Shown here one piece after another: positions 839 to 11,842 of a stretch of DNA of 64,000 nucleotides; within the stretch, counting starts at the first letter, position 1; every line of letters begins with the position of its first letter. The position numbers and the translations under genes are program-made. Under the pieces are notes generated by a model. It had not been told where the DNA came from and did not search any database. It saw only the letters and a program-made list of their open reading frames with translations. This DNA is from Lytechinus pictus (taxonomy: Eukaryota). The stretch is taken from assembly GCF_037042905.1 (NCBI RefSeq), contig NC_087262.1, forward strand, positions 22,506,001 through 22,570,000. Reading direction: 5' to 3'.

Positions 839-2073
839 TTTGGGGTCACACCTAACCTATATTCGCGGGTCATTTTCTGATCAGTACAATGACCCCATAT
901 CTGGACCCGTCAAGCGGGCCTCGCCCCGTCCCCCGCCCCTCACCTACCAACTCATCCACCCCCTTTTCCGTTGCATATCAATATTTTGATTAACGAAAAT
1001 GGGTCTATATTTTTTGCTTGTCAGACAGTTTTATCGGAAAAATGTTCACCATAAATGACTTTTCTTTGCAAGTCATTTCTTAAAACAAATCTTTCCTGCT
1101 TATAGCCTACATCAAAGTGTGTTCTTAATTACAGCGCGTCCCAGAAAAAAATGTCCAGTCAGAGCGCCACGCGTATGCTAATGAGCACGATCGCTGAAAT
1201 TTATTCAGAATCCCATCCGCCCGAAAATCATCTAGCGGGACTCTCGTAGATCGCGAGATATCACGAGAGTCATGCAGGTCTCGTTCTAATGACGTCATAC
1301 TCTTCACCCTAAAAGCCAAGATGGAAGAATGCAACCGTAAGTAAATCTTGAAATCTTTAGCTTTATTTTGATATGAAATATGTGGTAATCCAGAAAAAAA
1401 TTGAACCTGAAATAATGCTTTAGATCTAGGCAATATTTTAGCCGGATCGGAGATCGAATTTTTCATTAGAATGTTGTTTTTTACGTCCTGACCCTCCTCA
1501 GAATTTTTGGCTTTCGTGAAGCCTCCGATGTTGTAGAATATATTTCAGTGATGAACATGTGTAAATATCTCTGGGACGCAAAATCTCCTTCGTACTCGTA
1601 TTTTACGATGAAACTACCTCAAATTTTCCATTTTGTCAACTGCACTGACGCTGATTCTTCTTTTGTACTTGTTTATTTTATTGAGTGATGACGTCAGCCA
1701 TGGTCTCGCGCGGAGTAACCAACTGGTGGGTCAGTTCCATTAGTGTATTTTTGTGTCTTGTTTAAAAAGCTTGGTGCCCAATTCTCTCACATTGATTGTG
1801 CGAGGGCCAAATCATTGCCATGCGAACTTGAAATAAAGATTAGATCTAGTTTGAAATTATTTTGTAATTATTCCATGAGGTTGCAATCTAATTTTGTGCC
1901 TTATATTCTGATGCATTTCATCCAAATCAGACTATTATTTGAGACTGAGAGTGAGATGAGATAGAGCTCGAGAGCTGTGAGTGCCTGTGACACTAGTGTC
2001 AGTGACATGACACTGTCAACAGTTGTCTAAAAAAAAAGGGAATTGACAGATTGAGATTGACTGACTTCTTGAC

Positions 2074-2492
2074 TAGCCATGAGGCTCCTTGAGAGTAAAT
2101 ATCATTCATTAACGTGTGCTTACCTTCCTTGGAGCCAGGGATTGCATCCCATACATTTGCGTGTACCGCGAAAAAAAAACCAGAAATTTTACGCTCTCGA
2201 GATTTCTACTTTCCATATAAGAGAGGTAGATCTAGTCCTAAATCATGTGAATGGGATATACAACTTCATCTCTGACATTTTTACATTTAAACAAGAATTC
2301 ATTAAAAAGACAGAAAACTTTCAACGATGTTCATGTCACCATCATGTTTTTTTTTTTTTTTGCCAAGGCTACAAAACGCCTATTGAGGAAATGAAGTTGT
2401 ATCCCATTTACATGATTTAGGTATAGATCTTTTAGAAGGAAAGTAGAAATCTTGGGGAGAGTATGCATTCTGGGTCAGGAGCCTCCTGGCTA
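2074..2492. mobile_element. Palindromic MITE with TAGCCA(T/G)GAGGCTCCT termini (Academ-like TAG..CTA ends), nested in the large element
   Basis: TIR TAGCCATGAGGCTCCT / AGGAGCCTCCTGGCTA. Long internal inverted arms (GAGATTTCTACTTTCC...CTAAATCATGT...GGGAT). Same family as 56241-56862. Confidence 0.75.
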
Positions 2493-3728
2493 CAGGTATT
2501 CTCTCTAGTTGTCACTTGTCAGTACTAATAGATCTCTATTGTAATTGATTATTGAATTAAAGTTATTAAGTAAATTGAAAATGAATTATGGAAACCTCAA
2601 TAATAAACCTTGGTTAACAAAGGTGTCATTATAGATTTTTTTTAGAATTCAATTTAATCGTAGAATCTAATGTTAGATCTAAGCTTGATCTACTTTCTTT
2701 GAAAATTTAAATTCAAGACTCGGGCAATATACTAATCAAGAAGTTAACGTCCATGGGAACTAATTCATTTACTCATATTTTGTGGACTTTGAATTTTGAT
2801 GAGACAAAAATACATTTTAGCCCAAGATTTATTCAAGAAAGTTTGCATTTTTCAGGTGACAATCTGACATAGACTCAGATTTGAATTTTATTGCATTTTT
2901 AAAAACATGTATCATTACATGATTAATTGTGCAGATGGGTGAGGCCTGAGGGGCCCTGATATGGTGGGGGGGGGGGGGCTTTCATTATCATAACTGCACT
3001 TTTTGCTATAAATTTTATTACAAACAGCTAAAACTTACCATCCAATTATGATTTTTTGCATGATCCCAGGCTATGTTCTGCTCAGTCCTCCCCCTTCCCA
3101 CTCCAAAAAAAAAAAGAAGAAACATTCTGCGGCCTTTGGGTATCCACACAGACAATGTCATTGTACAGATATTTTTAAGAAGTGCCATACTGATACAGCA
3201 ACGCTTTGATAATTGAATTGTCACACTGCTGATTTTATTTTCTGGGGGAGCAGCAAAATTATTTTTTGATGGAGATGTGTCCCTCAAACCCTGAAATGGG
3301 AGTTCAAGAGGGAAACATACATGAACATGTATTTGTTTTTAATATAGTTAGGAAATATGAGCAATATTTTGATAAACTAAAGTATGAATCTATGCATTTT
3401 ATTTATTGTAAATTACTGAGCCTGCAAATTCTTTTTGCTTTGGGCAAAAATATTACTTGGATGGGCGCTTCTATTGCTATTTCAATAGATTTGTTTGCTA
3501 TTTTTTCCACCGTGTCCTTCTTCATTAAGTGCTGACAAATTTTTATATGTGAACATTGTAATTTTGCTCTGAGTAAATAAATGATAGGAAGTTAAATGTT
3601 ATGTTATTACATATTGCAATTATTTTCTTTGTAATGACATTTAACTCTCTGTCCTTTTGTTTTATTGCTTTCCTAGTTTGGAATTTATTTTGTTGTAAAA
3701 GCAATCTTTTCTTTTTTTTTCTTTACAG

Positions 3729-4026
3729 ATCACCTTCACATCTGTCTGGATGCCAAGTTCTTTTGATAGGAGACTCAATTGTGCGACACGCTGTTTTTAA
3801 TGGACCCTTTTCTTCTGAAACTTTGTGCTTTCCAGGGGCTAATGTTACATCGTTAAGATCATCATTCGTCAAATCTTTCAGAATTACTTCGACTTTTCTA
3901 CAAAGGCTGTTTTCATCCATATAGGAACAAACAATTTAGAACATAGTGTTTGGGAAAAGGATTCCAAAGCATTTCATAATTTGTATATTAGTGTTAGAGA
4001 GCAATTTCGGTGTGCAAAGATTATTA
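3729..4026 (+). pseudogene. SGNH/GDSL esterase-domain fragment (frameshifted), transposon cargo
   Basis: After the acceptor ctttacag: VLLIGDSIVRH (block I) and CFPGA (block II). After a frameshift near 3855: KAVFIHIGTNNLE (block III-like GxN). Truncated at ~4026. Confidence 0.7.
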
Positions 4027-4488
4027 ACTGTTTGGGATAAAGTACAGATTCCCATATACTATTATCCAGACATTGAATTATATGGCTTTGTTGTATCCAG
4101 GGATGATGGGGAAGTACATGTAGCATGCCAGTGGGACACAGATGAAAGTATTGAAAAGATTAAATCAAATGTTTTATATCTCACAAGGGGTTGTTCTTGT
4201 GCCAAGAGCAAATGTCATAACCGTTTATGTAAATGTAGAAAAGAGGGTAGATTTTGTGGGCCAGGTTGCCGCTGTAGACAGTGCCAAAATCTTACTGCTG
4301 TAGAGAAACTGGCAAGTGATAGCGACTCCAGTGAAGAAGATTCTGATATTGATCATTTTGATTATGATTCTGATTTTGATGAAGTTCCTTGTGATAAAAC
4401 AAATATCGAAGGTACCATTGAAATCGACATTGATGGTGATTTATCTCTGTTTGAAGATTTGCAGGAAGACTGTTCAGATTATGAGTAG
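4027..4488 (+). pseudogene. C-terminal fragment of an Academ-type transposase (Cys8/CXC-like zinc finger plus acidic tail)
   Basis: W..VQIP..YPDIELYGF...W...LTRGCSCAKSKCHNRLCKCRKEGRFCGPGCRCRQCQN, then a D/E-rich tail and TAG at 4486-4488. Confidence 0.7.
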
Positions 4489-4960
4489 GCATTCTCTGTG
4501 TCATGTTCTTGTAGCCCTTTAAAATCATTCATCAGTCATTTAATCAGTCTATTATATGCCAGTATTCATTGGCTGCTGTGAGGGTGAAGTTTGTTACATT
4601 GAATCAATTCATGATAGCTATTACTTTTATATTATGTACATGTTTTTTTTAATGGTTATAATTTTTGTTTAAAGAACATTTATAAGAAGGCATGACAGGC
4701 AATGTGGAAATGTTGGTGAGCATTTACACATGTTTTTTATGCATGTGATACCTTTTTATTTGTATATCATTAAGTGTCTGCAACATTACACTATTTCCAC
4801 ATTATGCATAACAGAAGAAGTTGAACTATTTTTTTTTTCCACAAGTATGCACATTTTTCATATATTTAACGTACCTTGCCATGTTATGTTTATTCTTGCT
4901 TTTTACTGCAATACATATGAGTCAGTGTATGTATACGTTTCTTGCCAGTTCCATTGAGGT

Positions 4961-5936
4961 CTTGCAGGTCAATCATTTTGGTAGCTGAAATAATAGTTGT
5001 CGTAGTTGTATGAAACAAATGTGAAGTTTCTTACGACAATTGTGAGGCTTAAGCAGAATACATGATGGTTACATGTATTTTGTTAGATTGGCTAATTATT
5101 TCATTAGCAATATATAGAGGTGCAGTACATGTATTTCCTCTTGAACTTTGACGCAGCTTTTTTCAATATGTGTGTGATTTACAATATCCTATAAAACAGT
5201 TGTGTATATTATTATTATTATTTTGCCCTGTTGTTGCTTTGCTTTTGCTACTTATGATTATGATTATGTAAATGTGTAACTTTTTTTGCTTACATACATG
5301 TATTGAACCTTTTGTACAAGTTGTCATGATGGTGAGCATTGAACTACCCTTGTTCCTACTTTTACATGTACATTATATATATTTTCATGATCACCTCTTT
5401 ATAAATTGTTTTTCCTTGTCATTTAGATAGTGCATTGTGGCAGTTTCTTGCAGGTCAATCATTTTGGCAACTCAGATAATAGTTTTTGTAGTTACATGTA
5501 TATGAAACAAATGATAAGTTTCTTACAGCAATTGTGAGGCTTAAGCTAAATACATGATGGTTACATGTATTTTGTTAGATTGGCTAATTATTTCATTAGC
5601 AATATATAGAGGTGCAGTACATGTATTTCCTCTTGAACTTTGACGCAGCTTTTTCAATATGTTTGTGATTTACAATATCCTATAAAACAGTTGTGTATAT
5701 TATTTTACCCTGCTGTTGCTGTTCCTACTTATGATTATGTAAATGTGTAAATTTTTTGTTTATGTAAATGTGTAAATTTTTTGTTTATATGTTGAAGCAC
5801 TTGTACAAGTTGTCATGATGGTGAGCATTGAACTACCCTTGTTCCTACTTTTACATGTACATTATGTATATTTTCATGATCACCTTTTTATAAATTGTTT
5901 TTTCCTTGCCATTTAGAGAGTGCATAGTGGCAGTTT
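4961..5936. repeat. Direct tandem duplication, 2 x ~486 bp
   Basis: CTTGCAGGTCAATCATTTTGG starts at 4961 and 5447. The copies are collinear to ...AGTGCAT(T/A)GTGGCAGTTT. Confidence 0.9.
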
Positions 5937-7014
5937 TAACATCTCATACACATGTTAACAATGGGGACATTATTACAGTTGGTGATACGTATATTGACCC
6001 CAGTAATTCCATATATTGTAATATGTATTACCTAGATATACATGTATGTAAACGTATGGCTGAATTATTTCTTTTATGAGGCAGTTTTGATGGCACTGAC
6101 TTCTGTATACAAAGATTATTTCACTTGTTTCCTGTCATGACTACCAAAGTAATTTCACTGATGACGGGCTTTCCTAAACAATACATTCCTTGTTTATAAA
6201 ATTGTTTTAACTCATATTTACCTCAACTACTGTCTGCTTGCCAAAGACATTCAGGGAGCATTAGATGTAAAACTGCCTTTATCTTTATTAACATGTTTGA
6301 TTGTAAAACAAAAACAGTATTCACTTATACTCTCTTCATGTACTTGCCTTGAATGATATTAGGTGCCAAAGTTTTTTGCTTGTATTTATATGTTTTGTAA
6401 ACATGAGTTTCAAGAGTTTGATGTTGGAAATAAACTCTTTTTTTCTTGTTAAAATTGATCAGATATTGAACATGCTTTCAATTTTTTTTCTTTAGGAATA
6501 TCCATTTACTATGAGCTAGATTTTGAATTCATGCATTGTATTGCACTGAAGATCTGAATATGAGAATATAGAAGAATAAATGAAGAAAGAAATAGAAAAA
6601 AAATCAAGATTTAAAGAAAAAGAAGAGAATATGTGTATGAACTTAAGTTACAGTTACACAACTGTTTAAACACGTTTCTGTGCATGACAAAAAGAAAAGA
6701 TATGTTCGATTAGAAAGTCGGCTGGATGTGTGAGGAAAATATTACATGTAATATCAAGAGAGAGAGAGACAGACAGAGCAACACTAATAGAGAGGGAGAG
6801 AGATGGGTGTTTCCCACGGAGAAAGGTGTTTGAAAATGAATAAAAAAACACAGTAGTGGGACAAGATTTGTGAATATGAGGAATTGAAAATTGAGGAGGA
6901 AGACGAGATCTGTTGAACAAATGATATCCAAGTATCCCACTGCACGATGGAATGTAATTGTTCAGAGAAAAGGGTGGATAATGAATCGTGATAAATAGAA
7001 ATGTACATCGCACC

Positions 7015-7336
7015 CAGGTGTGGAACCAGGGGGGGGGGACACGTGCTCCCCCCCCCTTGAGAGTATTGAGAGCAACTTGTCTATTTTTTTAAATGTAAAC
7101 ATACCGTAAATACACAAGTGTCCCCCCCCCTTAGAGTGGCAGCAAATATTTTAAATGGGATTATGTGGTTCCTTTACAAGTGAGCCCCCCCCCCCTTTTT
7201 TTTTGGGGGGGGGGGGGTTGTTAATTTCAAATGTGGCAAAATGTCAGTCATTTTTGGAGGGAAAACTTTTGCTTGTCAATATTTCCTACGAAATATTTGC
7301 CCCCTCCCCTTTTGGAAAATCCTGGATCTGGCCCTG
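7015..7336. mobile_element. hAT-type MITE
   Basis: Imperfect TIR CAGGTGTGGAACCAGG / CCTGGATCTGGCCCTG. 8-bp TSD ATCGCACC / ATCACACC (1 mismatch). Confidence 0.7.
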
Positions 7337-8635
7337 ATCACACCCCCCCCCCAAATAAATAAATAAATAAACAGAAATACTAGTGAATAAAACAAAATCA
7401 ACTAATGGGAGAAAGAAAATTGATAAAATGGATTGATAATGATTTAGAACAGTAAAACAAAACACATGAATTATGGAGGGTGTCTTTGCATTTTTGTATT
7501 TTTTATGCTTTTCTAAACTTCCAAGCATGTTGACATTTATTAATTGTTCTATCCATTCTTGTTTGTTTCTGAAAACGGGATGTGTGCATGTATGTAATTC
7601 TTTTCAACAAATCTTGGCAACAAAACCGGCCGGGGGGGGGGGGGCAGCATCAATAAGTTAACTAAGTACATACCGGTACATGTAATTCAGAAAACGCAGA
7701 ATTGCATACATGGGACTGAGTTTATTGATAAAACACAAATACGACTCTACTCACTTAGAATGGCTATAATAATGAATGCAGAGATATAAGGAAATATCCC
7801 ATAAAATTTCTTGCATTCTTGTCAGTCTTCTATATTGAAAAATCTATCAAAAACAATTTTACGTCTATAAACTTTGTATAAAAGAACAAATACTCTATGA
7901 AAGTAGACGACGTTGTTGTTCGGGGTTTCGCTTCGAAAGTCGATGTGTAGAAAGGTCATGACGTACCTGCGATCATGCATTGAATCCATGGAATGCGTTG
8001 ACCAATCAGATTGCTCTATTTACGTAACTCGTTTGAAGCTCGTTTTGGACAGGCCCTCATAATGACTTGGCGGTATGTTTCCCTGGTTCCTGACTCTCCT
8101 CATTAATGAAAAACCATGAGTTATGTCTCATTTTAAAGAGTGATAATTCAGCTTTACAACTGTTATTAAATTTGAAGGACGCAAGAATTATGAAATGGTA
8201 TTATACGTCGTTAAAGCTGAATGATTTGAATTTTTCCGGGGGCAAAGTTCTAGGGCAGTTTACCTTACTAAGTTAATGAAATATGTCGATAATTATGGTA
8301 TATATCGAATCCTTGATTCTTCCCCTTTCTATCGATATAATGTTTATGGTTTAAAACAGTAAATTAACCCGGTAAAACGCAGAGAAACTAGACCCTTGCG
8401 TTCCTCATTACGTATTCATGAACCGAGCGGTCACGAATACGAGCTGAATAAATACGTGCGAATTAGCTCGCGCGGCGGAGTGACTGTGTCCCTCGAGCAT
8501 AAGGCTGAATTAATTCCAAAATGTAGTGATAGTATTCTAAATTAAATGTACAGGTTTAGAAAGGTCATTTCATGTTCTAAATTCTATGAAAATTTCATTG
8601 GTCTCGCTTCAGCGGTTTTGAACGCATTCTCTGTT

Positions 8636-9950
8636 TTACGTAACAGTGATGCAGTCCATTCCAAGTTTGCAGCACTGATGTATATCTGCATTGTACTTAG
8701 TATGTTAACCCCCATTTTTACATCCAGGATCTGAGCAGGGACAGTTCCCTGATCTATCCAGGCTCATCAAATCATAAGTTGATAATGTTCTGAAGGGCAA
8801 GAAACATCCAGAATGAAGTTTGTTTGGGATTGACAGGGAAATCAGCGCAAAAACCTGAAAGAAAATTTGAATGATGGATGAGTACTAAACCTTTTTAAAA
8901 GCTGTACAATGAAGGCAAACCACAAGAGTATCGCAATTTGCGATAGCGAACATAACCAGTGGAAATTGATTTTTTTTAAAGAAATACATTTTCAGGGAAT
9001 TAAGTGTAACTTGACCCCAGTAACTAAATAACAAAAAATAATAATGAAAACGATGCAATTGTTGGAATTAGGCATGAAACAGTCATGACCTGTTGTCTCC
9101 ATCAGTGTGCATTTCTCATTATCAAATTTGAATTGGACTGCTTTTGCCCGTCTGAACCTATATACGGTTGAGATTTGATGAGCCTTGTTAGATCGTGGAT
9201 ACTTTGGGGGACGCGCTGAATTTTTTTCTGAAGTCTAACTCTCAAGAAATATTTAAAATTTTACGCTTTGATAAAGTCAAATAACTTCTAGTTGTGTTTT
9301 ACTTGTCGGAAGAAATACATTAAGCTATATACATGAATGTATATCTGATTTTACTTTATTGCGATTGCTTTTGAATAAAAACACCACAAAATAGTCAACG
9401 CGATGAAACGAAAGAGCAATGCCAACAGCGATTTGAAAACTGACATATCATTTTGTGCACCACGTGTGATAGACTTGACGCACAATTAAGAATTGTATAC
9501 AGAAAAAATATTATTAAAAAGAAATGGCAATAATTACGAGTATCTACATATTTATCTCAATATTATAGTTGTCGATGCAATCGATGAATATAGTTGATTT
9601 AGAATAAATTGGTTTTTTATAATTATGCTTATTTATTTTTCACACAGGGATCCGTAAAACATATACAATTTCTTGTTAAAGAAGAAAATGCCAATTTAAC
9701 ATTACTGCTCACACATAGATCTTATCTTCTAATTTTTGATCCAGTATAAATGATTTTTTCTCTGGCTGAAAATAAATAGGATCAATAATTGAATATCCAA
9801 ATCACTAAAATTGATTGAAATCATGGTAAAAATCATGAGAACAATACTTACCATCGCGCCAACTTCATCATCAATCAAATCAGCAGACCACCCGTTTCCA
9901 ATAAAAGAAGTGATAAAGAAAATCACTCCTAAATTCAGTGTCAAAGTCAT
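8636..9950 (-). pseudogene. Candidate 3-exon gene (likely disrupted) for a secreted Cys-rich prepropeptide; exons 9950-9852, 9234-9090 and 8854-8636
   Basis: Exon 1 MTLTLNLGVIFFITSFIGNGWSADLIDDEVGAM|gtaagt is signal-peptide-like, phase 0. Exon 2 TSEKNSARPPKYPRSNKAHQISTVYRFRRAKAVQFKFDNEKCTLMETT G|gtcatg is phase 0->1. Exon 3 follows ttctttcag and reads GFCADFPVNP..., stopping at 8772. A shifted frame is Cys-rich to 8636 with one internal TAA. Confidence 0.5.
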
Positions 9951-10185
9951 TGCCTGTTTAATTTCTACACGTAGTATACTTAGATTTCTATTCAATAGGA
10001 ACAAAATAGTAGTTGTTCTTTTTTCAAAATCAAATGAAAAGAATTAAAACAATTATTTAGAACATGCACAATTAACACTCTCAAATTATAGTCTCGTCCA
10101 ATAAGTTATAAACAAGATATATTATTCTTCGATGGGCTCATCAAAACATATCACTAGAGATTGAGAGCCACTGCACTTCTCGCGA

Positions 10186-10196
10186 CTTTTATATAG
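10186..10196 (-). promoter_or_regulatory. TATA box for the candidate secreted-peptide gene
   Basis: Minus-strand CTATATAAAAG, about 235 bp upstream of the ATG at 9950. Confidence 0.5.
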
Positions 10197-11842
10197 TTTT
10201 TGGAAATATGTATTTTGTCATAGTATAATTAAAATTACAGGCATTCATGACACCTTTTACAAGAACCCACATATCTGCCTTGTTATGACGACGCGTGCAA
10301 GTAATCAGGAATAATTAGCTTAAAACAAATAAAGATTTCACTGAGTATTATCTAAAATATGTTTGTAATTGATGGATTAATTATACTACATGGAATGGGC
10401 AATGGCAAATGTCCTTTCCGGAAAATCATCTTCGGAAATAGGGTTAAATATGCCATTAATTATGCTCCTTATGTGTAGTGTTAGCAATATTGGAATGTGC
10501 AACTTATTGCACCATTTGGGAGATTACACATTCACGCCTTGTAGTTATAGTATGATGATACCATAATTGTACAATTTTGCAGAAATTGTAAGTTGGCAGT
10601 CTTGGTGATCACAAGATGATATAGTGGGCCTACCAATTAATATATGTGGTTTAATTCTTTCAGCATAAGTTTGTTGAAGCCTGTCTAAAATTTGGTAAAG
10701 GTTTGATGATGTAAATTATATTTGGAGTACATGTTTATCTAGCACTAAAATCTAACAACAGAGGAATCGTCCTCTTTTTGTAACACAAAATTGAAATCAC
10801 ATTTGAGGATAAACTGCCCCCTTATTCGGCAATGCTTTTCTTTTCTTTAAATAGACCCTTTGAATAATGATTTTACACAGAAGCGTCGAGCCTGGAGGGC
10901 AGATGGCGATCGCCCCACCGATGAAAATATTGGGGTGGCATATCTTTTTGCCCCCCATAATTCCGGAAGTGCAAAAATATAATAATATTGTAATGCTACA
11001 CAGAAATCGGCTAATTAACCAAACACAATATAAAATTCGGTTTTTAAATCAATATTACAGTAAAAAATTATGATTCCTTCGCGCGCTCCGCGCGGGAAAT
11101 GATTCCATTTATCATTGGAACTTTTGTTAAGGTTAATTTACACAGGAAGTTCAATATATAGGCATACAATTATTTCTGCCAATGAATAAACAAGAAAATG
11201 GCAAACCCTTTAATGTTTTAATTCCATTTCATCTTGAAATATATAGTATTATTACCTATTTTATATTTTCATTTGTCAATAATGCGCAGGAGAAATGGTA
11301 GGTTGGGCAGAACATCAGTAAGTAACTATATGGATGATTTTACGAAATAATGTTTGGATAACTACGTTGTGCAGGCAATCTGAGAATCATCTTGATCGTG
11401 AAGTAAAATTGAATCCAACATTTACAATATAATTACATTTTTCCTTTGCATGAACCAAAACCAGTGTCGTAGCCAGGGGGTTCCCTGAGTTCCGCGGAAC
11501 ACTGCCGCTTGCCAACAGCAACAAAAAAGATGGGGGGGGGGGGGGACAAAAAGGAAAAGATTATTATGCCCGCGATTCGAATTTCGTTTTTTTGTTTCAG
11601 CGAGATACGCGATTACGTATCCTGATCATGATTACAAAAAGTGCTGAATAAAAAAAATGTTCAGTTCGCGAATTGATAATTTGATTAGCGATTCTTGCAA
11701 AGTTAATGGTTTAATTCAAGATGTTGTTAATAGATGATGTACTCTAGCATTATCAGCCATTTCATGCTGTATGGAAAAAAATACTGTTTGGGTTATTACA
11801 ATATAGAAATACGCAGTTGATATATTGATGACGATCCCCCCA

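Follow-up and report, generated by a model that had tools for sequence, protein, structure and literature searches.

The stretch of DNA analyzed here is a 64,000-nucleotide (nt) piece of the genome of the sea urchin Lytechinus pictus (contig NC_087262.1, positions 22,506,001 to 22,570,000 of the forward strand), referred to as a whole as the window, and the element in question occupies window positions 1156 to 8486. It carries the beginning of a predicted SGNH esterase gene (open reading frame 1 [ORF1]) and the end of a transposase gene (ORF2) on the same strand, set between terminal inverted repeats (TIRs) and 4-bp target site duplications (TSDs). Its full-length counterpart, the full or master copy, is a 13.2-kb element at G000:C3:42730021-42743221. 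Coordinates below are window positions unless full-copy positions are named. The window copy is composed of the following features.

1152..1155: left TSD copy, TGTC (identical 4 bases at both ends)
1156..8486, forward strand: whole element, 7.3 kb, an internally deleted, nonautonomous derivative of a 13.2-kb transposon, probably of the AcademX type (from copy comparison)
1156..1208, forward strand: 5′ TIR, which starts CAGTCAGAGCGCC... and includes a subterminal ATTTATTCAG motif (aligns with the reverse complement of 8444-8486)
1329..1336, forward strand: end of ORF1 exon 1, ATG at 1329-1331 and then CAACC, with the donor GT at 1337-1338 (gene model P0033, which starts MQP, and an RNA contig)
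1337..3728, forward strand: ORF1 intron 1, 2.4 kb, with a small 31- to 35-nt inverted repeat at 2200-2452 (gene model and RNA contig)
3729..4025, forward strand: ORF1 exon 2, first 99 codons, with SGNH blocks I to III (translation and comparison with the full copy)
3769-3777, 3832-3840, and 3924-3935, forward strand: SGNH blocks GDS (I), PGA (II), and GTNN (III), respectively (three-frame translation of 3700-4500)
4025..4026, forward strand: deletion junction, at which 6.4 kb is gone, comprising the remainder of ORF1 plus 1629 ORF2 codons (alignment with the full copy)
4026..4488, forward strand: last 153 codons of ORF2 and stop, with a CXC (Tesmin/TSO1-like) Cys9 domain at 4186-4290 and then an acidic tail (Pfam TCR)
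4489..8443, forward strand: 3′ noncoding region (copy alignments)
8444..8486, forward strand: 3′ TIR, which ends ...GGCGGAGTGACTG (end alignment)
8487..8490: right TSD copy, TGTC (identical 4 bases at both ends)

Limits, copies, and transcripts of the element

The limits of the element were established by comparing copies. Positions 1156 and 8486 are the exact points at which similarity stops in every alignment of the window with 10 near-identical loci and with the long copy. The window element is collinear with the 10 other deleted copies at 96 to 98.8% identity and with the full copy at 93 to 99%. In a single-base comparison, 11 of 11 elements begin CAGTCAGAGCGCC... and finish ...GGCGGAGTGACTG, and all 11 are flanked by a perfect 4-bp TSD. 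The duplicated sequences differ between copies (TGTC in the window; TGAC, CAAA, TGTA, ATAA, TAGG, GTAT, TATA, and TCTA among the others), and the likelihood of eleven perfect 4-mers arising by chance is negligible. The TIRs start with 5′-CAGTCA and are imperfect, with a close match of ~33 bp inside a gapped alignment of 43 to 53 bp; the ATTTATTCAG motif is common to both ends and lies internal to this matching part. An earlier note on this DNA, made from the sequence alone, had proposed degenerate inverted termini of ~120 bp at 1108 and 8525. Direct alignment of those ends is patchy, and the 11 copies place the limits at 1156 and 8486 instead; the outer 40 to 48 bp on either side, up to 1108 and 8525, are flanking DNA found in no other copy.

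A 21-nt inverted match (81%) between 1127-1147 and 9203-9223 lies outside the element on either side. The insertion site may have been part of a different element with TIRs, or a sequence of dyad symmetry, and this match may also be the source of the misplaced termini in the earlier note.

We searched the L. pictus genome in six frames with the C-terminal peptide of the window element. It matched 29 places, 13 of them at 97 to 100% identity over all or nearly all of the peptide, and one of these 13 near-identical loci continues into an open frame of 1782 amino acids (aa). The terminal 300 bp are present in 14 to 15 copies with ends that are 98 to 100% identical, apart from one 5′ end at 94%. 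In all, the genome carries a single full copy of 13.2 kb, whereas about 13 copies share the same 6.4-kb deletion. The near-identical ends and the low copy number mark the family as small and young. Taken as a whole, the element at 1156-8486 is probably a recently transposed, nonautonomous copy of a cut-and-paste transposon of the AcademX kind, whose master carries an esterase ORF1 and a transposase-nuclease ORF2.

Full-copy positions 4977 to 11357 are absent from the window, where full-copy position 4976 is joined to 11358 and the remainder is collinear, so the proposal that an internal deletion had joined the ends of two genes holds. The same junction is found in the window and in all 10 other short copies aligned, which indicates that one deletion product was amplified by transposition, necessarily in trans. 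By coordinate arithmetic on the ORF and junction positions, the esterase and transposase pieces are joined out of frame, and the short copies therefore never encoded an esterase-transposase fusion.

Both gene fragments described in the earlier note are present, each with a correction. Translation of 3729-4025 yields the SGNH fragment with GDS, PGA, and GTNN, but the three blocks do not share one frame: the run at 3876-3878 is one T shorter than in the intact copy, which leaves GDS and PGA in one frame and GTNN in another. The window copy retains only blocks I to III, in this frame-shifted form. The adjoining transposase C terminus lies on the same strand (4026-4488) with its Cys finger and acidic tail; the finger has nine cysteines, not eight, and matches Pfam TCR (PF03638) at 30.8 bits (cutoff, 23.5; E = 3.5e-7). 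The 1782-aa ORF ends in a sequence 98% identical to this peptide.

Evidence at the RNA level comes from Logan contigs; the raw RNA-seq runs (X21 and X22) contained too few reads to be informative. Contigs spanning the deletion junction have depths of 105 to 360, versus 5 to 13 over the part specific to the full-length element, and there is a loose end at full-copy position 4976. The junction contigs indicate that short copies are transcribed. The splice acceptor noted earlier at 3727-3728 is real, as gene model P0033 reads MQP followed by SPSHL across it and one RNA contig joins '...GAATGCAACC' to the start of ORF1 exon 2. A GT..AG joint from full-copy position 5649 to 5898 was found in two Logan runs. 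Both ORF1 introns are thus confirmed by RNA contigs.

The ORF1 esterase and its pairing with the transposase

The full copy contains, on one strand, a 362-codon SGNH frame, a 202-codon Pro/Ser-rich frame, and a 1782-codon frame. The SGNH frame is 100% identical to the 529-aa NCBI model 'uncharacterized protein LOC129268148 isoform X2 [Lytechinus pictus]' (P0033), and this database protein, with its MQP-SPSHL start, served as the spliced ORF1 sequence. Exon 1 ends with ATGCAACC followed by GT (window 1329-1336), exon 2 starts at window position 3729, and the second intron, ~250 nt long, follows a Lys/Arg-rich stretch. The Pro/Ser-rich frame makes up the last exon and finishes ...SNSLG-stop. With the same termini as the window copy and a complete SGNH gene upstream of the 1782-aa ORF, this intact 13.2-kb element matches the ancestor envisaged in the earlier note, one with an intron-containing esterase and a transposase. 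An out-of-frame ATG in good Kozak context lies at 1321-1323, 8 nt upstream of the gene-model start of ORF1, and after splicing would open a 17-codon upstream ORF.

Full-copy ORF1 narrowly passes the threshold of Pfam Lipase_GDSL_2 (33.1 bits; cutoff, 32.9; E = 9.7e-8). By sequence, its nearest solved structure is PDB 4C1B, deposited as 'ORF1-encoded protein' (E = 1.2e-12), and platelet-activating factor (PAF) acetylhydrolases come next. We take 4C1B to be the ORF1p esterase of a zebrafish L2 long interspersed nuclear element (LINE), ZfL2-1. The GDS, PGA, and GTNN blocks are intact in all four L. pictus families examined (see below), and block V (Asp-x-x-His) reads DGLH in three of them and DFVH in the fourth. 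Judged by these motifs, full-copy ORF1 is a predicted SGNH esterase of the LINE ORF1 type with intact catalytic motifs. By analogy, the enzyme may act on lipids or membranes.

Esterase ORF1 proteins are a long-standing puzzle of CR1/L2-type LINEs. The element shares with these LINEs (ZfL2-1) an enzyme of the SGNH family with blocks I, II, III, and V, and the bicistronic layout in which the esterase, as ORF1, lies upstream of an enzyme ORF. It differs from them in that the partner ORF encodes a DNA transposase-nuclease rather than an endonuclease/reverse transcriptase and in that ORF1 has introns and a long Pro/Ser-rich tail.

The order of SGNH frame, Pro-rich frame, and large frame is the same in three further L. 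pictus families, whose transposases are 51 to 53% identical to the one described here and whose esterases are 33 to 38% identical to its esterase. Genome-wide, at least 10 SGNH matches pair with a transposase C terminus on the same strand 6.5 to 8.4 kb downstream. The earlier note had predicted multiple copies with SGNH exons and a transposase between 3- to 4-bp TSDs, and the three additional families have that layout, while the TSDs of the 11 copies are all 4 bp long. A hidden Markov model (HMM) of the esterase also found a match upstream of the transposase in Diadema antillarum, Acanthaster planci, and the brittle star Amphiura filiformis; the A. planci esterase is a C-terminal half only, beside an assembly gap. 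The same HMM found none within 6 to 8 kb of the transposase at the Owenia, Halichondria, and Mytilus loci. Correlating SGNH with transposase divergence as a test of coevolution was uninformative, the families being about equidistant. With its place ahead of the transposase in Diadema, Acanthaster, and Amphiura as well as in the four diverged families of L. pictus, the esterase is a conserved core gene of this lineage and not cargo, as the earlier note had put it, and the association so far is echinoderm-wide.

In Mytilus edulis, a GDSL_2 lipase gene (L045:15936-16568; Pfam, 37.1 bits) lies 2.5 kb downstream of a transposase homolog on the same strand. With no more than 16% identity to the urchin esterase, its product may or may not be part of the same element.

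The likeness to a LINE protein bears on a different reading, in which the SGNH piece would be just a single LINE ORF1 fragment that inserted into, or was captured by, one family and has no role. Apart from the nearest solved relative being a LINE ORF1p esterase, weak SGNH matches occur elsewhere in the genome (24 to 26% identity) and are possibly LINE ORF1s. However, a complete SGNH ORF with intact catalytic motifs occupies the same place on the same strand in four families with esterase identities of only 33 to 40%, and in three echinoderm classes, and its stop overlaps ORF2 at a conserved motif. The ORF that follows is always one with the DDE and XPG regions described below, never APE/reverse transcriptase (RT); in all four L. 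pictus families it matched DUF6589 and TCR, with no RT or endonuclease match. A stray LINE fragment is therefore very improbable.

We give just as little credence to the possibility that the large ORFs belong to the host and that the fragment in the window is a pseudogene remnant, even though NCBI annotates both ORFs as ordinary genes ('uncharacterized protein LOC...') in several echinoderms. Against it stand the TIRs, the perfect TSDs, the dispersal of near-identical copies on many chromosomes, and the presence of several diverged paralogous families per genome. The Cys-rich peptide, for which a match to a nontransposon gene had been named as a refuting outcome, matches transposase C termini only.

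The ORF2 transposase-nuclease and its superfamily

Pfam recognizes only two regions in ORF2 (1782 aa), DUF6589 at aa 707-1019 and the C-terminal CXC (TCR) domain. We collected 32 ORF2 homologs (sea urchins and the genera Acanthaster, Amphiura, Owenia, Mytilus, and Halichondria) and aligned and structure-predicted two regions. The order that emerges is a Cys-rich N terminus, a DDE/RNase H-like region, an XPG/FEN-fold nuclease, the CXC domain, and the acidic tail.

The predicted model of region 1225-1640 has a predicted local distance difference test (pLDDT) score of 89.6, and all its significant Foldseek matches are to XRN1/2, EXO1, Rad2/XPG, FEN1, and T5 FEN (probability, 1.0). The acidic residues of the motifs IIEGM, FDQ, HEE.D, S.D.D, and GCDF are invariant or nearly so, those of FDQ, EE.D, D.D, and GCD being invariant in 28 homologs, and presumably correspond to the metal-binding carboxylates of FEN1. 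The predicted structure thus identifies the ORF2 nuclease as one of the XPG/FEN fold.

In the AlphaFold2 (AF2) model of region 430-1120 (691 aa; pLDDT, 80), a large helical segment is inserted into an RNase H-like sheet. D547 (β1, SIDNID), D758 (β4, AGDGAT), and E1012 (helix, LDEAHE), all invariant in 24 homologs, are the candidates for the catalytic residues. An exhaustive structural search (VIA) ranked the P element transposase first (Z = 9.4), followed by Hermes (8.6), Tn5 (8.0), and RAG1/BbRAGL (7.5); retroviral integrases and other DDE enzymes came lower in the list, and then other RNase H-like enzymes (Argonautes and UvrC). The closest solved folds are therefore those of the P element and hAT (Hermes), which share the RNase H-like core and a large all-alpha insertion before the catalytic Glu. 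The differences are that sequence similarity is undetectable, that TSDs in those superfamilies are 8 bp long, and that they have neither an XPG nuclease nor an esterase.

Several results weigh against this account of ORF2 and against the superfamily label discussed below. The XPG/FEN call comes from structure only: Pfam XPG models gave no match to the nuclease region in the full copy or in the other families, an NCBIfam search gave no XPG relation for ORF2, and phmmer against the PDB found no relative of ORF2. Foldseek matches to the 691-aa DDE model were weak (P element, E = 0.08; none below E = 0.001), and the top VIA score of 9.4 is little above the typical background best of 7 to 8. The Academ label, in turn, is drawn from architecture, TSD length, and the taxonomic range of DUF6589 and makes for a probable assignment only.

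The starfish, brittle star, and annelid relatives of ORF2 carry an OTU cysteine-protease domain within the transposase (Pfam OTU, 24.5 bits, above the cutoff). The insert lies at P0015:560-860 in Acanthaster planci and is also found in P0018, P0023 (Owenia), and P0028 (Amphiura). Its position is the one at which the sea urchin protein has a disordered loop inside the DDE region.

AcademX is a lineage of the Academ superfamily of DNA transposons (Kapitonov and Jurka, 2010; Kojima, 2020). Its signature, as Kojima is reported to have described it in 2020, is a DDE transposase and an XPG-type nuclease in one protein. AcademX elements have 3- to 4-bp TSDs and encode a nuclease, and Academ as a whole is split by nuclease and helicase (PMC10045372). 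We apply the Academ label because a DDE region and an XPG fold occur in one giant protein, without a helicase and with 4-bp TSDs. No helicase Pfam match was found in any ORF of the full copy, and there is no real helicase ORF at the locus of the sponge (Halichondria) homolog. Academ has been reported from animals, including bivalves, and from fungi, and as abundant in Basidiomycota, Mucoromycota, and Mollusca. These three groups are also the richest in DUF6589 clusters, which supports the label indirectly. Membership in the AcademX lineage is therefore probable. The label given in the earlier note stands as far as architecture goes (DDE fold, XPG/FEN fold, and 4-bp TSDs).

Alternatively, the element could belong to another or an unnamed DDE superfamily that gained an XPG/FEN-fold nuclease independently, in which case the anatomy described here would be right and the Academ name wrong. 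Room for this is left by the Pfam name of the core (DUF6589 only) and by the closest folds being the P element and hAT. The combination of DDE, XPG-type nuclease, and 3- to 4-bp TSDs is nevertheless the AcademX signature (TSD and nuclease, PMC10045372), and the DUF6589 clusters fall in the groups of reported Academ abundance. We consider a separate origin unlikely.

As a probable AcademX element, the family is typical in its one very large DDE plus XPG-type nuclease protein, its 4-bp TSDs (3 to 4 bp in AcademX), and its short imperfect TIRs. It departs from AcademX in having a separate, spliced ORF1 that encodes a LINE-type SGNH esterase and whose stop overlaps ORF2 in the −1 frame; the starfish, brittle star, and annelid relatives depart from it also in their OTU protease insert. 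We found no paper linking an esterase to Academ in the accessible literature (an incomplete set that does not cover Repbase annotations), so the earlier suggestion of an undescribed lineage holds within that scope.

The ORF1/ORF2 junction

In all seven echinoderm families compared, ORF1 ends in (L/Q)G-stop on the sequence GGGGUGA or, in one family, GGGGUAA. ORF2, in the −1 frame, becomes open only 3 to 13 codons before this point, and its reading of the shared bases is GV(K/R) in these seven families. Conservation of the ORF2 protein begins exactly at the junction and includes the Cys motif PPCxKxxCGPCxLC; in five of the six families read, the first AUG comes only after this motif, and no AUG is conserved. 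In four further ORF2 homologs, predicted with a prokaryote-style gene finder, the protein starts at this VK position, so that GUGAA is implied for them as well. In four of six families, hairpins that start within ~15 nt downstream exceed shuffled controls in strength (z = −2.3 to −5.5). An RNA contig across the ORF1 stop is unspliced and collinear with the genome, and no splice joint starts there.

From the arrangement of the two frames, ORF2 is most likely made as an ORF1-ORF2 fusion by −1 ribosomal slippage. The overlap resembles those of IS3/IS1 elements and retroviral Gag-Pol, in which two frames overlap, the downstream enzyme ORF lacks a start codon of its own, and a short overlap window finishes at the upstream stop. 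It differs from them in that slippage would take place on G_GGG, beside a stop codon, rather than on X_XXY_YYZ, in that frameshifting is here an inferred event, and in that the hairpins form no conserved stimulatory structure.

Four points speak against slippage at this site. Only four G's make up the slippery run, which falls short of a canonical heptamer; the bases GUGAA might serve as a stop-start overlap or as a weak splice donor instead; a consensus hairpin downstream of the junction was looked for with RNAalifold and not found; and RNA coverage of the junction is thin (depth, 5 to 9). In the alternative that follows from the second of these points, ORF2 would be translated separately, by reinitiation at the GUG overlapping the ORF1 stop, from another non-AUG start, or from a rare spliced mRNA. 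The GUGA stop-start overlap is present in six of the seven junctions read as DNA, the start of the four additional homologs at VK would extend it, the motif resembles a splice donor (G/GURAG), and the starfish family has an AUG seven codons downstream. On the other hand, the run of four G's, needless for reinitiation, is kept in seven of seven families, GUA replaces GUG in one family, and the RNA contigs cross the junction unspliced. Separate translation is thus rather unlikely, if a serious contender. The complete proposal, in which an echinoderm-wide AcademX lineage has a LINE-like two-ORF plan and its esterase ORF1 is coupled to ORF2 by a −1 frameshift at G_GGG_UGA, giving an esterase-transposase-XPG fusion of ~2,300 aa, is one that we put forward tentatively, as a realistic possibility.

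In the overall account of the family that we consider probable, the single 13.2-kb master is transcribed from inside its 5′ end into an mRNA with two introns and two overlapping frames. ORF1 (529 aa) supplies the SGNH esterase followed by a basic stretch and the Pro/Ser-rich tail. For ORF2, with the stop codon in the A site, tRNA-Gly would slip by −1 on G_GGG and so yield the ORF1-ORF2 fusion; termination-coupled reinitiation at the overlapping GUG is a less likely route. The transposase presumably recognizes the TIRs by their CAGTCA... sequence, cuts the element out, and makes a 4-bp staggered cut where it inserts it. Between the esterase and the transposase C terminus, 6.4 kb has been lost from the window copy, which retains both ends, the promoter region, and exon 1. 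In that form it was multiplied about 13 times in trans, and it is still transcribed, although it encodes only a short truncated peptide.

In sea urchins, starfish, and brittle stars, the first gene of a cut-and-paste DNA transposon is a conserved and intact one for an esterase of the type known from LINEs. The conservation of this esterase argues for a general need of mobile DNA in these hosts and not for one of reverse transcription itself. The young, transcribed family of L. pictus, with one intact master and about 13 deletion derivatives, makes the role of the esterase testable in a laboratory sea urchin, and the conserved GGGGUGA overlap makes recoding in a eukaryotic DNA transposon directly testable. 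If the proposal is true, a eukaryotic DNA transposon would, for the first time to our knowledge, be reported to use programmed frameshifting and to have an esterase as an obligatory component. The OTU-protease variants further suggest that Academ transposases acquire accessory enzymes more freely than recorded.

The noncoding parts of the window copy have some features of their own. The 3′ noncoding part contains a tandem duplication of ~490 bp (4960-5446 and 5446-5936; ~87% identity). The full copy has a single ~490-bp unit, as apparently do two short copies, which makes the duplication a polymorphism of the family. Homopolymer runs of G and of C, 10 to 13 nt long, are clustered at 7020-7360, also in the 3′ noncoding region, and are common to all copies. 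The inverted repeat in intron 1 pairs 2200-2258 with 2400-2452 (31 to 35 nt, 80 to 90% complementary), and RNA-contig depth spikes to 72 to 87 at its full-copy equivalent. This repeat may be a small nested hairpin element or a miniature inverted-repeat transposable element (MITE) that is also expressed from elsewhere.

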